Assembly: GCA_904063045.1 (NCBI GenBank)
Contig: CAJFCJ010000001.1
Span: forward strand, 2,790,001-2,854,000
Direction: 5' to 3'
DNA length: 64,000 nucleotides
From: Dimorphilus gyrociliatus
Taxonomy: Eukaryota; Animalia; Annelida
The notes under the pieces are model-generated. The model saw only the letters and a list, made by a program, of their open reading frames with translations. It had not been told where the DNA came from and ran no database searches. Shown piece after piece: positions 22,762-31,600 of the stretch (within the stretch, counting starts at the first letter, position 1; the number at the start of each line of letters is the position of its first letter). Both the position numbers and the translations under genes were made by a program.

Positions 22762-25004
22762 ATGCTTTTACAAATTTGTTATGAATGGAAAAATGAAAAG
22801 ATTACAAAGTCATTTGATGGAATTACCCTACTCCAAGGCTTTAGACCATGGTGTGACCTTATGGATAAAAACAAACGAGTTGAGGCTGTACCAACTTTTC
22901 AACCTATTCACTGGTTTAAGGTTTTTATGATAAAGCAAATAGATATAAGCTGCTTTGAGAGGAAATTAAGAGTGAAATGGAATAAAAATCAAAATGAATT
23001 TACTGAAAGAGAGTTATCGGATAATCTTATTCATAGTGATCTTTTCTCAAGAGCATTTAATTTATGTGTTCAACCCGTTAAACGGGAGGATCTCGGCAGA
23101 GTTTTGTTAGAGTTTCTAAATATTTCGCTATTCCCAGCAATACCTATTGTAGAAGATTGCGTAGAGGAACTGCATCAGGCTATAGCTCAACTGCAAAAAT
23201 ATGTTGACGATCACAATCGAAGACTTAATCTCAAAAATGACACGGTTAAAAGTAACCAAAAGCATGTGATATTACTTTTAATGAAACTAATTGAAGAGAC
23301 TGATGTTATTAATAATCCTATTGAATTAACATACTATAAAAAGGAGGAAGTTGAATGGTTTTCGAGAGAGTTAGAAAGTGTAAAAAGATGGATGGAAGTT
23401 ACACTAGAAGCTGAAATTAAATCAGAAATTTCTGATAATAGATTTAAGTTTTTAAATGAACTATTCAATCCATACAAAACAGCTATTGGAAATGTTGGCG
23501 ATATCCTTCGTAATTGGAGAGAAAGGAGTTTGTTTCGTTTTAAAAAATACAGCAAAAATTCAATTAGAGAAAAATTATACGCTGTGCAAGAAGCTAAAGA
23601 AAGTGTTGTCAAAGCCAAACAGGTAAAACTGCACTCTAGCTATATTGAAATAATATAAGGTTAACTATAGATTATATAAATTTATACTGTATATATATGC
23701 TAGTCTGTATAATATAATGGTTCTGTAGTTAGGACATCAATATAATAATTTTTTGATAATATTCACATAAAAGAGGTATCACAGCACTTACAAATTAATA
23801 TCAGTAAGGATCGACTGAATATGTTTTAGTAATTTCTTATCATAAGATATCGGACATTGACTTTAGACTATTGTTAATAGCACAGTCTAACATTTTTCAG
23901 GAGAGGCAAGTATCTCTGGATCGGAAAATGGTTATAAACGCTTTAATTGAGGCTGCCAAATCATCCTTTCGTGGAGTACCTAGTCATAATTTGTTGGGAA
24001 CATATCCAGAACTTTTTGTCTTAGATGGAGCTAAACCGTCAACCTTAGAGGAGAACATTGAATACTTGATAATAAAAAATGAGACAATTTTTGACAAGCA
24101 TCAAAATTTTTGCATGGAAATTGTTAAAAAATGTAAGACTCTATCACCGCCTGAAAGGAAAGCAACAGATACAAAAGCCAGAGGACTTCGAAGGAGCATG
24201 ACTTTACCAAATCGATTGTCTGGAACAATCAACTCTCTTAATCGCCCAGATTTCGAGAAATTTGAACAATTTTTGTCTGATTTCTGGAAAACTTCTGTTC
24301 CTAGTCACTTTCTCGAAATGACTGAACTGCTAATCTCTGAATTGTCCAGTGACTTTAAAGATAATGTTGATAGTATTGAAAAAATATATATTCGACATTT
24401 TTATGTCGCTATTCATCGACCTATATTGGAAGTCTATCAACGCTTTTACAGAGATCGTCTTGAAAATACTTCCTGTTTAACTTTTGAAGACTTAAAAATG
24501 GAAGAAAGTGACGTAGTGAAGGAGATATTTAACGAAATGGAATTTTCCGATGATGAAGACAGTTGTAGTACAACAAAACCCAGAAATGAATTTTACGACT
24601 ATCCAGACACAGCTGTAGATGCTATGAGATTGGAAGAGATAAAAATGAATATTCCTTGTGAGAAGCCGCCCTACTTTAACAGTCAATATAAAAAGAAATT
24701 GGGAAAAGTATATGAAAGTTTGTTACAAGCTAGCTCCTGTCCAATTCCCGAACTGGCCATGGAACATTTAAAAGCGGCATTCGAATCATACAGGCAGGTA
24801 CTCAAACTATCGAAGATAAACGGCGATACGATACCTGACGCTTTAGTTATATTATTATTGAACATTGATTCATCAATGCTTTTAGATTTGTTCTCAAACG
24901 TTTCATTTTTCTTTAACGTAAATCCTCAAAATCACAGCCAAGATAGTTATTGTTTATTGACACACTTTACTGCAGCAGGCCACTATTTATATTCCATATT
25001 CTAA
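22762..25004 (+). CDS. Divergent VPS9D1-like protein (2 coding exons, intron 23623-23900; start uncertain)
   Basis: The two long ORFs join in phase 0 (AKQ|ERQVSLDRKM). ESVVKAKQERQVSLDRKM..EAAKSSF resembles the VPS9D1 coiled region as I recall it, and the C-terminal GDTIPDALVILL...SYCLLTHFTAAGHYL resembles a VPS9 domain. Confidence 0.5.
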
Positions 25005-25426: not shown

Positions 25427-28046
25427 ATGAAGTTTCTATTAATTTTAATAATTTATTCAAATTTATTCACAAGTATAAAAGCTTTTAATACAAAATTAGG
25501 AAGAAGGAAAAATGTCTTTCTAAATAAGAAAAAGTAAAAATAACAAATCAAACAAAAATATGAAAATTGTATATTATGTTTTTTTTTAAAAAAACAAATA
25601 ATTATCAATAAAATAAATAGGGCTTTACAAATTCTTAAAACGAGAAGAAGAGTTAGAAGAGGACTGGAAAATGAAGCTTTGTAAGATTCTTATTAAATTG
25701 AAACAAGATTCTATGGATAAATATCAATTTTATATAATTGTAGCTATAAAAAGCTAGAGTCTGAGGAAATTCAAGAATTTATGAAAGTCTGTCCTCATTT
25801 AAAAGACATAAAATTGAATGGAAAAGAATATGGATACTATGTTACTGATAGATCCGCTTTCTGGGAAGAAACACTCTATTTAGCAGTTTCAGAAGTTAGG
25901 TTTTGTTGTCGTAGATACGTTGGTACGTCATTATTCTCTCTTAAGATTGGTTTATTCATTTTGCAATCTCACAAGGCGGTTGGTTTGGCTATCCTTTTAT
26001 TTATGAGAAAACAACTGGTACTAGAAGACCATTTAACTGGGGGAGGGTGGACGCAACTAACGAAGAAAGACAAGAAAGTTTAAAAAGCTTTTATATTCTA
26101 AAATATTCATTAAAAAACATTCATATATTGTATTCTATCTATTCATATAGCAAATGAACACAAATTAGAAACAATAGCGGAAATCGTTGAAGAAACTTAC
26201 GAAAAAACTCAAGGTACTCAGAAAGGCGATTTGAGTTATGATGAATTTCAAGCTGATAGAATAGTAATTAATATTAAAATAGATAAACAAACAATAGGAA
26301 ACATTTATCCATAAAAAATTAGGGCATATATATAGGAATTTGGGATTGTTTATACGTATCGAAATCGAAACTTTGCCCAGATCCGTGTAATCGTCCAGAT
26401 ATATGTAGAAAACCAAATACGGAGTCAAATATCCCGTGTAGATCATACGTATCGGATAAAATGAAACTTAAAGTGAAGAAATACTTCGACATTGATAAAA
26501 GTGATCAGTAAGATAAGAACAATTCCTTTAATATATATATATATATATATATATAGATATCTATACAAATCTTACATCTCCTTTTAGTATATATAGAAAA
26601 ACTGCTCATCTGTACGGTAAAGATTATTATTGCCAATGTAAACCTGGTTATAGTTGGCAAACAGAAAGAAAACAATGCGTTAAAAGTAAGAGTTTTAAGT
26701 ATCCTTTTTATATGTTTCTTATTATTATTATTATTATGTCTATATAGAAAATCGTTGTGTCTCTAGGGAAATTGTTTGTCGGAATGGTGGAACTTGTTTT
26801 GTACGAAAAGATAGCTAATTCATTTATTCAATAAACTATTGAACTTTATTCATATTTGTTGTTTTCATTTAGGAATCTGATGATGGTTTTACCTGCCTTT
26901 GTACGGGTGCATTTAAAGGACCATTTTGTAGAATAAATAGAAATCCTTGTAATTCACCAAAAGTGTCAATCTATGAATTAGGTTGTATTGAATTTTCAAA
27001 TTGTAAGAGAGATCCGCAAAATTCTTTAGGATATTGGTAAGATAATGAAACAAGAATTTGATGGATAATTTTTGAACTATTCCAAAAAAGGTGTCTATGT
27101 CCAAAAGGTTATGAACATTCTGAAGAGAATAATAATATTAACATTTGGAAGAGAAATCCTAGATGTTATGATATCAATGAATGTAAAAAGGTTGCATTTT
27201 GTCTATCTATTCAATTTTCTATATATATTATTAACTACTCTTGTTTAAACATATACAGAATATTCATAAATGCAATGAAGGATCAACGTGCATCAATACA
27301 AGAGGAAGTTATAGGTGTATCTGTCCTCCAGGAGTTGTTGGTATCTATTGCCAAAATAATATAGCAAAAGATAAAATTGGGTTCTTTGGCAATATTCACC
27401 TAAAGCATGATTGTTCAAAATCTTGCGGTATAAGTTACAGAGTTTACCAGCAAAGCTGCCTTTGTCGTAACGGTAAAATAATATATATATTTATTAAATT
27501 AAATTATAGAGAAAGCTTTATAATTAATAGAAGAAACTGGAAAGATAGCTACTTGTTATACACCAAGCTATTGTTTGGTCAATCCAATACCAAACGGCTA
27601 TAATTATTCAATAGAACTTGTTGGTAAAGACAATAGGCCGGTTCTTATATTGGAAAAATACGAAAAATGCGAAATACCAGAATGTAAGGAAAACTATTGT
27701 TCGGATGAGGATGGGAAATTAGTTCCTTGTCAAACTAGGAAAAATGACGCAAAGGAAGGAGAAGTTATACCTTCATTCTGTAAAATTTTCAATTAAATAT
27801 TACTTTTCTTTTATTAAATATCCATTTACAACAGATCAAGATGATGACATACTACCAAACAAGAATGATGATGATATATGGAAAAAGCCGGAACCTTGTC
27901 AATACGACGATTATAATCCTGGATGTAAGAATGTAGAAACTGATTATAGGTTTAAAGAATACGATGAAAATTTTGCATCAATATTATACATCAATTCTTC
28001 TATTCTTCTCTTTACTGTTGCAGTTGTAATAACACTTACTCAGTAG
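25427..28046 (+). CDS. Secreted/membrane-anchored EGF-repeat protein with TSP1-like module and a Gla-type propeptide (about 11 exons)
   Basis: Exon 1 25427-25533 (signal peptide MKFLLILIIYSNLFTSIKA), exon 2 25621-25680, exon 3 from 25744, all in frame. Later exons give EGF motifs (CRNGGTC..CLCTGAFKGPFC; CYDINEC..CNEGSTCINTRGSYRCICPPGVVGIYC), CSKSCG, and a hydrophobic C-terminal tail (GPI-signal-like). Confidence 0.8.
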
Positions 28047-28655
28047 GGTTTATTGTTTTTTATTTTCCTTGTTATTGATATTTAAAAACTTCTCTATTTA
28101 ATAGTAAAATTCCATTCTTAATAAAAAAAAAAGAAATAACTAATAATGCATAAAATGTTGAGATTTTTTTACTTTTGTTTTTCCTTAAAAAGGACAAACA
28201 AAACCAAAAAAAGAAAACAAAAAAAAATTGATAAAAACTCACTCAGACTAGAAAGTTATAAGCAACAAACAAACAAACAAAAAGACTTCATAAAGCAGTA
28301 TGAAAGAAATAATTTGAAAACTGAACAAAAAGAAAACAATTGTTTTTCGACTCAAAATGTTCGCAGGAAGGATGGATAACAAAAAGATAAAATGCCGGTT
28401 TCTGTGCTTTTTTTTCTAATTGAACATAGTAAAAACTATATAATTTATATTCATATATAGTAGCTAGCTATGTGTAATAAAACTTTTTTTTCTGATTTTG
28501 TTTAGAAGGGTTGAGAAAAAGATTTTTATAGTTTTTTTCAAATTCTACTGGTTGATTTGCATAAGTAGATAAAGAGAGAGAGAGAGAAAAGTGAAAGAAA
28601 TGAAAGTATGAAAAAAGGTAGTATCAAGGGATTCAAAAAAGTATACGTAATCCTT

Positions 28656-31600
28656 CTATAAATTAGAGAGATTTTCAATAAGAATTCTAGCGAATGCAGC
28701 GGCTGAGAGGGCGGCATAGTGCTTCCAGACACTCTTTTGATTAGCACCGTCCTCGTAATCGGAAACTCCTCTAATAAATATAAAAGAATCTTTACAATTT
28801 CCTACGACCGATTCCATTACTTGGTCAAACAGTGGTGGATCGAACCCAATTACTTGATGTCTTATGGCGAAATCAGATCGAAGGATTGACTCTTCAAACG
28901 GTCTACCAGATGCCAAACATCCTAAACGGACTATTGGCGTCTTCTGTTTAATATTTGCATCTTCAGGAATTTTCGGATGTTCAATTCTGATGAGTTTATC
29001 TTTATCTGGCCTCATGTACAAGATATCGCTGGAATCTTGAGGTCTGGAGAAGCTATGCGCATTCTGAAGTGTTCCAAGTTCTTCGGCAGCTTCTCCCATA
29101 TAATCCTCCAGAGTATTTGATTTCAAATCATTGAGAACAGTTTGAAGACTTTCAGAGAGTTCACTGACAACCAAGTCCTGATGTGGAAAAAAATGCAACA
29201 GTTAGATAACAATTTTTTTTTGCAATTACCAAATAAACTAAAACAGACTTTAGCATTCCACGACTTTAAAGAGAATTTCATTATGTTATCAGCGCTTCTT
29301 TCCACTTTGTCGGCAAAGATGTACGAAATTCCTTTAGAATTAGGAACTGAAACGATAATATCACCCAATCTAACGTGTTTTCTATAATCAACATAGTCCG
29401 GTACACCTCCGCAAATGCCCAAGAGTATTACATGTTCAACATCACTGAAAGTTCCCAGTAGTCGCGTTGTTGAATTTCCAGATGATATCAAGGCAGAACG
29501 ATCTCGACCAACAATCGGTAATTTAGTTGAGACTACGCGATGTTTACCAATGGAACCGATCGTGTAAACGTTGCCGTCTCCTTCTTGCTTAAATTTCACA
29601 AAAGTAGTTTTATCAGACATCATCGAATCGATGGCCATTTTCTCAAAGAACGACGATGTTATAATGGCAATAGAAGGTTTTTTAATTCCTTGTTGAACTG
29701 GCATCTGCTTCATTTCACGTACAGCTAGAAATAAATTAAAATATAGCCATTATTTTCATAAGATACAATTATTATTGATTTTGTTTTCACTGTGTCAACT
29801 TATTCTTATCGGACCAATGTATATATTCATACGTAATTTAAATGGTTGTTAAAACAGTGATATCAAAAAAACAAAAAGAAATACTATCGAAATTTAAATA
29901 TTTCCTTACAGTAAACAAATCAGGTATAATGACAGATTAAAGTGATTTTGTAGCTTTTTACATTTTGTATCTATACAAAAGTGGCATTTGGCTATAAATA
30001 GAACAATATCACTTTTCTCTATGGAAACAAAAGTTCTTTTTACTTACATTTATCGTAAAGTAAATTTCTAATATATTTGTTCCCTTCGTCATCCAAGCGT
30101 TTAATTAATTTCTTATCGATAAGCTGTTGAAGCTGACTTATAACCATATCATGATCTTCATTTGTTACTCTAAACAAAGAAAATAAGAAAAGTTATAGGC
30201 TGATTCTAAAAAACGTAAAAGCAGCAAACTTACTCTAAAAGTTTATTAATGTCAACACAATTTGGAAAGTGTCTTTCAATTTCTGAGAGTAATTGTTCTT
30301 GTACAATAACGTCTCTGGGTCTGTTATCCTCTTCAAATGCTATAAATAATTAAAAATAATTAATCATAATGGTGAACAACTTGTTTTCATATATAAAAGA
30401 TAGGAAGGAAAGTTTATGACTATAAGAAAGACAAGAGAGAAAAATGCCCATTCCTTTGTTTTAAGTTTTAAACTTACTGTCTTCTCCATAAGTGGGAAAA
30501 TCAAGTAGTTCATTAATAATTTCATTATTTTAACAATTGAAATGTACACAACTTTTTATTTTTGATTATATAATAAAGATACTTTTAAATGATGAGATAA
30601 ATACTTACGAGTTTGCGCACTTATCTCCGGTGAAACTGGGGTCATTTCAACTTCGACCTAGATTTTAATCAATTGTAAATATTTAATGTAAATAAATAAA
30701 TAAAATTTAAGATATACCAACCCTCAACACTGCATAATACTGATCACTTTTTTCCAAAAGCTTCATTGCTTTTTTAATAAAATGTGGATAATCTCCAGGA
30801 AAATCATCTGGATTAATGAGTTCCAGAAAGAAATCTCTTGCTCCGCATATCTTCTGCTCATGATCTGAATTTTCTCTAAACCAAAAATATAGAACACGTT
30901 TTTCCTGTTATAAACGAAAAACAAAAATTAAAATAATGTTATTAAATCAGCCTATATTAAAAAAAATAAAATGAAAAACTATTAAGATTACGTAATGCTA
31001 TTAAATATCGTAATTTTTTCATCTTTTTAAGTGGTTAACGGCAATTTAATACAATTTGCATTGATATTAATTGCTCTTTATTTTTTTAAGTCTACGTGCT
31101 TTGTTTATCGATAAAACAAAAGTTTGGTTTTGAAAACAATATCATGAAGGTCAAGGAGAATTCTTTAGATATTGCAAACGATTCTTCATTTTAATACTAT
31201 TTTAGCATAGAATTGATTGATCGAATAGAAAATTTTATTATTTACACAAATGTGTTCGCTGGTTTTCTTATTTACAAGAAAACATCGAAATTCCATGCTT
31301 AATTCAGCACACTCTTCTCCCCCATCTTCAATTTTAGCCATTTTATTAACGACAAGACGTGAATGTGCACCCCCTCCTGAATGATGAACCTAAAAACATA
31401 GAAATTCATGAAACACTGTTAACACTAAATAAAATTTACTATATTATTAATATTTGTTCTCCTTTTACCTGATTAAGGTCTATATTAGATTTTTTAATTT
31501 TCTCCAGTCGAATTGCAGTTGACTTGCCACGTTTAGTGGGTGTCATAACAATTTTTTCTGTAAAAGATATTAAAAGAATACAACAGATGCTAACGAATTG

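Follow-up and report, generated by a model that had tools for sequence, protein, structure and literature searches.

A gene on the + strand, at positions 25427-28046 of a 64,000-nucleotide window from contig CAJFCJ010000001.1 of the annelid Dimorphilus gyrociliatus (the window being the whole stretch of DNA analysed, in whose positions all coordinates are given), encodes in our model, which draws on the sequence and on an ortholog, a protein of ~590 residues in 13 exons. Behind the signal peptide and ahead of a basic cleavage site of this secreted protein, which carries EGF-like modules, lies an 18-residue segment whose comparison with vertebrate propeptides and with the ortholog indicates that it is a real, conserved motif of the vertebrate type, a candidate recognition site for GGCX, the gamma-glutamyl carboxylase that depends on vitamin K. 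The gene model was hand-built from the sequence and then corrected against the ortholog, which lies on a 23-kb Logan contig (L009) of a related species and was reached via the downstream neighbour, a PNP_UDP-like gene (P0007); searches were run exon by exon. The window is AT-rich (G+C ~30%), and its parent assembly comprises 77.9 Mb in 349 contigs. The features of the gene are given below, with percentages denoting identity to the ortholog.

25427-25533, + strand: exon 1; ATG at 25427, signal peptide (about residues 1-19), start of the pro-segment, R/K-R-K (25502-25510), propeptide positions -18 to -12 (25511-25531) and two bases of the -11 Lys codon; placed by the donor GTAAAA at 25534 and the ortholog alignment.
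25534-25620, + strand: intron 1; 87 nucleotides, phase 2, interrupting the propeptide at -11; both junctions of exons 1 and 2 align with L009, the intron interior does not.
25621-25680, + strand: exon 2; propeptide positions -11 to -1 (to 25651), RRR (25643-25651), VRR (25652-25660), then GLENEA of the mature N-terminus; placed by the donor GTAAGA at 25681 and the ortholog alignment.
25744-25922, + strand: exon 3; 179 nucleotides (ortholog: 179), an N-terminal region rich in Glu and poor in Cys, in which P.LK, KE, FW, Y and E.RF..RY are conserved.
25976-26077, + strand: exon 3b; 102 nucleotides (ortholog: 102, L009 14023-13922, minus strand), GWFGYP...TG..R.FNWG, with WFGYP and FNWG invariant; donor GTTTAA; 39%.
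26151-26213, + strand: exon 4; a short acidic segment, probably helical; 44%.
26336-26507, + strand: exon 5; start of the first Cys-rich EGF-like module; 59%.
26588-26685, + strand: exon 6; end of EGF-like module 1, with weak cEGF and EGF matches; 69%.
26748-26800, + strand: exon 7; start of EGF module 2; 67%.
26873-27036, + strand: exon 8; EGF module 2 ends and module 3 begins here; 63%.
27091-27190, + strand: exon 9; EGF module 3 ends and module 4 opens with the calcium-binding DINEC, with weak cEGF and EGF_CA matches; 64%.
27259-27472, + strand: exon 10; calcium-binding EGF module 4, after which a Cys-rich region begins; EGF_CA 28.0 bits and EGF 27.7 bits, both above their cut-offs; 61%.
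27531-27779, + strand: exon 11; Cys-rich region of no known family, single copy in the genome; 44%.
27835-28046, + strand: exon 12; an acidic stalk followed by a hydrophobic C-terminal tail up to the stop codon, resembling a glycosylphosphatidylinositol (GPI) signal and present in both species; 34%.

The 12 introns of the gene are GT-AG without exception and 54-228 nucleotides long, and the frame is open through every junction, with consistent phases. The translation of exon 1 is MKFLLILIIYSNLFTSIKAFNTKLGRRKNVFLNKK, with two bases left over that belong to a Lys codon; unless spliced, the exon then runs directly into an in-frame TAA, so that the GTAAAA donor at 25534 is required; the first AG 3' of this donor is at 25619-25620, and the sole usable GT..AG pair joins exons 1 and 2. 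Exon 2, from 25621, completes the Lys codon, reads ALQILKTRRRVRRGLENEA and then requires the GTAAGA donor at 25681. Exon 3b was recognised through comparison with the ortholog, having been absent from an earlier, sequence-only reading of the DNA. That reading had placed the end of exon 1 at 25533 and the start of exon 2 at 25621, and had given the 18-mer, the VRR that follows it and the numbering exactly as we find them. It had also described the motif as split by an intron and as placed after the signal peptide and before a basic cleavage site, which exons 1 and 2 and the L009 junctions bear out.

The spliced exons 1 and 2 encode a hydrophobic signal peptide (residues 1-19 in both species, as judged by eye, with the pro-segment next), then NVFLNKKKALQILKTRRR, then VRR, the 18-mer propeptide occupying 25511-25533 plus 25621-25651 and VRR occupying 25652-25660; the pro-segment between signal peptide and basic site is ~27-30 residues long. 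Numbered from the third Arg of RRR, the 18-mer has V-17, F-16, L-15, A-10, I-7 and L-6. The Phe at -16 is preceded by a hydrophobic residue (VF here, IF in the ortholog), as is the Leu at -6 (IL here, VL in the ortholog), Ala-10 is encoded in either species by the first complete codon of exon 2, and the basic site ending at -1 is TRRR here and RNKR in the ortholog, with D. gyrociliatus having in addition an RVRR three residues further on. In the cryo-electron microscopy structure of GGCX with factor IX, the propeptide is anchored by Val at -17, Phe at -16, Ala at -10, Ile at -7 and Leu at -6 (PMC12647623), and all five of these positions are matched by the worm 18-mer (V, F, A, I and L). The context is likewise canonical, the 18-mer standing right after the signal peptide and right before a basic processing site. 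A further tribasic site, R/K-R-K (25502-25510), abuts N-18 and is kept in both species, which gives the 18-mer basic sites on both sides; we know of no counterpart of this upstream site in vertebrate propeptides.

On L009 every exon of the EGF gene is present in order, at 32-69% protein identity, and the flanking genes retain their order at 78-81% DNA identity. The propeptide of the related species reads NIFLPKEKAFQVLKRNKR, with the same splice junctions in the same phases, and its pro-segment runs ...LKRKNIFLPKE(K)AFQVLKRNKRFFYRNKG. Ten of the 18 positions (56%) are identical between the species, namely N-18, F-16, L-15, K-13, K-11, A-10, Q-8, L-6, K-5 and R-1; F-16, A-10, L-6 and R-1 are thus among the unchanged residues, and -17 and -7 are V/I swaps. 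The conservation of the Phe, Ala and Leu, on which the sequence-only reading had hung its proposal, is accordingly seen in the one ortholog at hand. The identity of the 18-mer is like that of the EGF modules (59-69%) and above that of the mature N-terminal exons (32-39%). At six of the ten identical propeptide residues the two species use different codons, including the split -11 Lys (AAG here, AAA in L009); the R-1 codon is AGA here and CGT in L009, and in the other exons 40-55% of the codons for identical residues differ. Because silent sites are so well diverged, the identity of the propeptide reflects selection. Given the 35% identity of the N-terminal exons, the probability of finding the four key residues identical and two more similar is ~0.004.

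The ortholog also bears on the numbering. Its single furin-type site, RNKR, aligns to TRRR, and the VRR of D. gyrociliatus is without counterpart, which supports the F-16/A-10/L-6 numbering and answers the caveat, raised when the motif was first proposed, that RVRR three residues on would shift it. In matrix Gla protein the recognition element lies at no fixed distance from the cleavage site (PMC4537219), and propeptide numbering is therefore a convention. At more distant syntenic loci (P0013, P0012; L014, L016), reached via the downstream neighbour, no trace of the EGF gene was found.

The chance of such a match was estimated for the motif [VILM]F[LIVMF]x4Ax2[VILM]L, with a basic site at the right spacing, from the amino-acid composition of the window, and came to 0.7-1.2e-7 per residue. 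D. gyrociliatus has 14,203 genes (PMC7854359), and the number of chance matches expected in the whole proteome (~14,200 genes) is well under one; within 40 residues of a signal peptide it is ~0.003-0.005 per genome, if ~10% of proteins are assumed to be secreted. The core motif occurred at 0 of 364,258 six-frame positions of the available DNA, as compared with ~3 expected, so that the estimate is not too low, and we allow it a several-fold error, amphipathic helices being non-independent draws.

Both enzymes of the vitamin K cycle, whose presence the sequence-only reading had proposed to confirm, are found in the genome: a single GGCX gene at C19:2420059-2421641 (HTTM domain PF05090, 157 bits; lumenal domain PF22777, 127 bits) and two separate VKOR-like loci (PF07884) at C8:424862-425275 and C13:1308738-1310336. 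When aligned to the human GGCX chains in the PDB (native numbering from the 758-residue chains), the worm GGCX keeps the catalytic residues H160, K218, W223 and D263. The contacts of GGCX with the propeptide have been named as Tyr415, Leu426, Val430 and Phe431 (PMC12647623); the human groove residues Y415, Y425, L426, V430 and F431 correspond to F, Y, L, V and Y in the worm enzyme, so that the propeptide docking site is kept. The GGCX of the fly is reported to recognise human propeptides (PMC12112360), so that recognition appears to be conserved in protostomes; the fly enzyme is active, without a known substrate and without a phenotype on knock-out (PMC12112360, PMC5578492).

Taken in order, the predicted pre-pro-protein would begin with a signal peptide and a pro-segment; beyond a basic convertase site there would follow a Cys-poor region of ~125 residues, four EGF-like modules, a Cys-rich region, an acidic stalk and a hydrophobic tail. 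In the endoplasmic reticulum, the 18-mer would dock in the propeptide cleft of the worm GGCX through V/I-17, F-16, A-10, I/V-7 and L-6, and GGCX, recycled by VKOR, would turn some of the Glu residues of the next ~40 positions into gamma-carboxyglutamate (Gla). A furin-type convertase would then cut off the pro-segment, presumably behind RNKR in the relative and behind RRR or RVRR in D. gyrociliatus, leaving at the cell surface a mature protein with a putatively calcium-binding acidic N-terminus ahead of its EGF modules. Glu residues make up 7 of the 40 positions from +1 to +40 here and 6 of 40 in L009, versus ~7% elsewhere (P ~0.02 and ~0.06, respectively). Whether the EGF protein is a true carboxylase substrate is in our judgement close to an even question, with the balance slightly towards doubt. 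We propose tentatively, and at somewhat less than even chances, that it may be the first endogenous non-venom carboxylase substrate in a protostome, a surface EGF protein with a propeptide code of the vertebrate type and with its Gla in a novel module that has no relation to the Gla domain.

To our knowledge, GGCX and VKOR are kept throughout animals, and outside chordates the only known substrates are the venom peptides of cone snails; our search of the literature turned up no annelid paper on Gla. A candidate that is conserved and whose motif is clean makes the role of carboxylation in invertebrates experimentally approachable; it comes from a small, culturable annelid whose carboxylase keeps the residues that bind the propeptide in humans. 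If the proposal is correct, the propeptide code would be older than the Gla domain, or would have outlasted it, in animals that have neither clotting nor bone, and it could serve protostome proteins that have no Gla domain.

Compared with the vitamin K-dependent propeptides of vertebrates such as factors IX and X, whose sequences are confirmed in published papers, the worm segment is alike in its length of ~18 residues between signal peptide and mature chain and in having a hydrophobic -17, F-16, A-10, a hydrophobic -7 and L-6; position -1 is basic too, and so is -4 or -2. Identity to the factor IX propeptide is 7/18 here and 8/18 in the relative. The worm segment is unlike them in its intron at -11 and in the conserved tribasic site in front; what comes after it is an unrelated region of ~125 residues in place of the canonical Gla domain, with its Cys loop and invariant Glu, of the vertebrate proteins. 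Osteocalcin and matrix Gla protein resemble the worm protein in lacking a Gla domain of the coagulation type, a recognition sequence and a few nearby Glu being sufficient in them, but they are small mineral-binding vertebrate proteins without EGF modules or a membrane anchor. The venom peptides of Conus are, like the worm protein, lophotrochozoan; their carboxylation is propeptide-directed, and hydrophobic residues define its recognition (Bush et al. 1999, as cited in PMC4537219). They are the only well-established protostome substrates and differ in being venom peptides. No recognition sequence of theirs is known to have the vertebrate F-16/A-10/L-6 spacing, which the worm 18-mer has. In the Gla proteins of ascidians (Ciona, Halocynthia), likewise from invertebrates, a carboxylase-directed N-terminus is joined to EGF and further extracellular modules, as would be the case in the worm protein, but these are chordate proteins with canonical Gla domains and the worm protein is a protostome protein without one.

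Several observations weigh against carboxylation of the EGF protein. The Gla-domain profile PF00594 matches no exon of the gene, there is no Cys loop, and exon 3 has no conserved Cys; scanned in six frames, the genome gave no Gla domain either, the best match (C15:742414-742464, E = 2.55) being noise, although short split exons could hide one. A canonical Gla domain following the propeptide was rejected on these grounds; the genome scan also implies that the substrates of the worm GGCX must be of another kind, which counts in favour of the proposal. The FW...Y of exon 3 is reminiscent of the aromatic stack in Gla domains, but the spacing differs and no profile supports the likeness, which we regard as unsupported. 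Gla residues are normally strongly conserved, and only two Glu within the first 40 residues are conserved between the species (+17 in D. gyrociliatus with +15 in the relative, and +38 with +36). The genes of vertebrate Gla proteins have their intron at a position other than propeptide -11, and the intron at -11 thus lends no support to common descent. Conservation has been read from one ortholog (L009), the donor of exon 3b (GTTTAA) is weak, and the R/K-R-K before N-18 leaves room for another role of the 18-mer. The motif is short, and in an AT-rich genome whose proteins are rich in K, N, F, L and I an amphipathic helix arises by chance more readily than independence implies. Finally, the F/A/L/R pattern had also led to periostin and beta-ig-h3 being predicted as substrates, yet both turned out to be uncarboxylated, their motifs not supporting carboxylation (PMC4537219); these motifs, however, are buried in folded FAS1 modules, whereas the worm motif lies in a canonical N-terminal pro-segment.

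Much of this would be accommodated if the 18-mer belonged to an ordinary convertase-cleaved pro-segment, a cationic amphipathic helix kept for folding, sorting or masking, whose match to the consensus is coincidental and on which GGCX does not act. Such a pro-segment would call for neither a Gla domain nor well-conserved Glu positions; N-18, K-13, K-11, Q-8 and K-5, which are conserved although they are not among the anchors defined in PMC12647623, would fit another binding partner. The case of periostin shows that predictions from the motif can fail, and with many genomes scanned, rare chance matches will surface somewhere. On the other hand, coincidence would have to produce matches at five of five structure-defined anchors, at the exact spacing to the basic site, and to preserve them while silent sites diverged, where only ~0.003-0.005 chance matches in this context are expected per genome; it would also leave aside the conserved groove residues of the worm GGCX. 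We therefore take this alternative seriously, at odds moderately below even.

Alternatively, the 18-mer could itself be the product, released as a free cationic amphipathic peptide with a signalling or antimicrobial-like function. The basic sites that flank it (RRK or KRK before N-18, R/K-R-K in both species; RRR or NKR after it), its net charge of ~+4 and its amphipathic spacing would suit such a peptide. Peptide precursors, however, do not usually take the form of one copy placed N-terminally in a large EGF protein of the GPI type, there is no amidation signal and there is no paralogous family, and we consider this origin of the conservation improbable. That exons 1 and 2 are foreign to the EGF gene or otherwise spliced, the motif never being translated, is highly improbable: the first hand-built model did lack exon 3b, but all 12 introns are GT-AG with phases consistent over 13 exons, exon 1 hits a stop unless spliced, and L009 keeps the exon order, the lengths (179 nucleotides for exon 3, 102 for exon 3b) and the junctions while the intron interiors are not kept.

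The remainder of the protein begins with the Cys-poor N-terminal region of ~125 residues encoded by exons 3, 3b and 4, for which no Pfam match was found. A search for homologues of exon 3 among 1.84 billion representatives, which seem not to include the proteins of this genome, returned only proteins with leucine-rich-repeat-like repeats having a CP.L..L.L unit (P0001-P0006); as repeat proteins of the leucine-rich-repeat type, these were rejected as orthologs. Within exon 3 itself, the stretch at 25760-25830, EIQEFMKVCPHLKDIKLNG, resembles one unit of the leucine-rich repeats of the ribonuclease-inhibitor type, which may well be a chance likeness. Searches with exon 11 for homologous proteins gave no candidates, and a search of the PDB with exon 2 gave nothing meaningful. 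Exons 5-10 encode four EGF-like modules, the last of which is calcium-binding (DINEC) and scores above the EGF_CA and EGF cut-offs. The C-terminal hydrophobic tail, seen by eye in both species, ends here at the stop codon and looks like a GPI signal, by which the protein would probably be anchored at the surface. The description of the product as an EGF protein of the cell surface, made before any database search, agrees with these Pfam matches and with this tail. No paralogs of exons 1, 3 or 11 were found in the worm's own genome, where the gene is single copy.

The gene lies between a 377-codon open frame upstream (23871-25004, + strand) and the two-exon PNP_UDP-like gene downstream (28656-29713, - strand), in an order and orientation that are kept in L009. 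The protein of the downstream neighbour is 94% identical between the species; as compared with this, the 32-69% of the EGF gene marks the latter as fast-evolving. The signal peptide (25427-25483) shows a different pattern, in that all 8 residues identical between the species (Met excluded) also share their codons, whereas elsewhere ~40-55% of such codons differ; this suggests that the 5' end of the coding sequence is under constraint at the nucleotide level. Among simple repeats, an (AT)n microsatellite lies in intron 5 (~26535-26556), and the intergenic region on the 3' side holds a run of (GA)n (~28574-28590).

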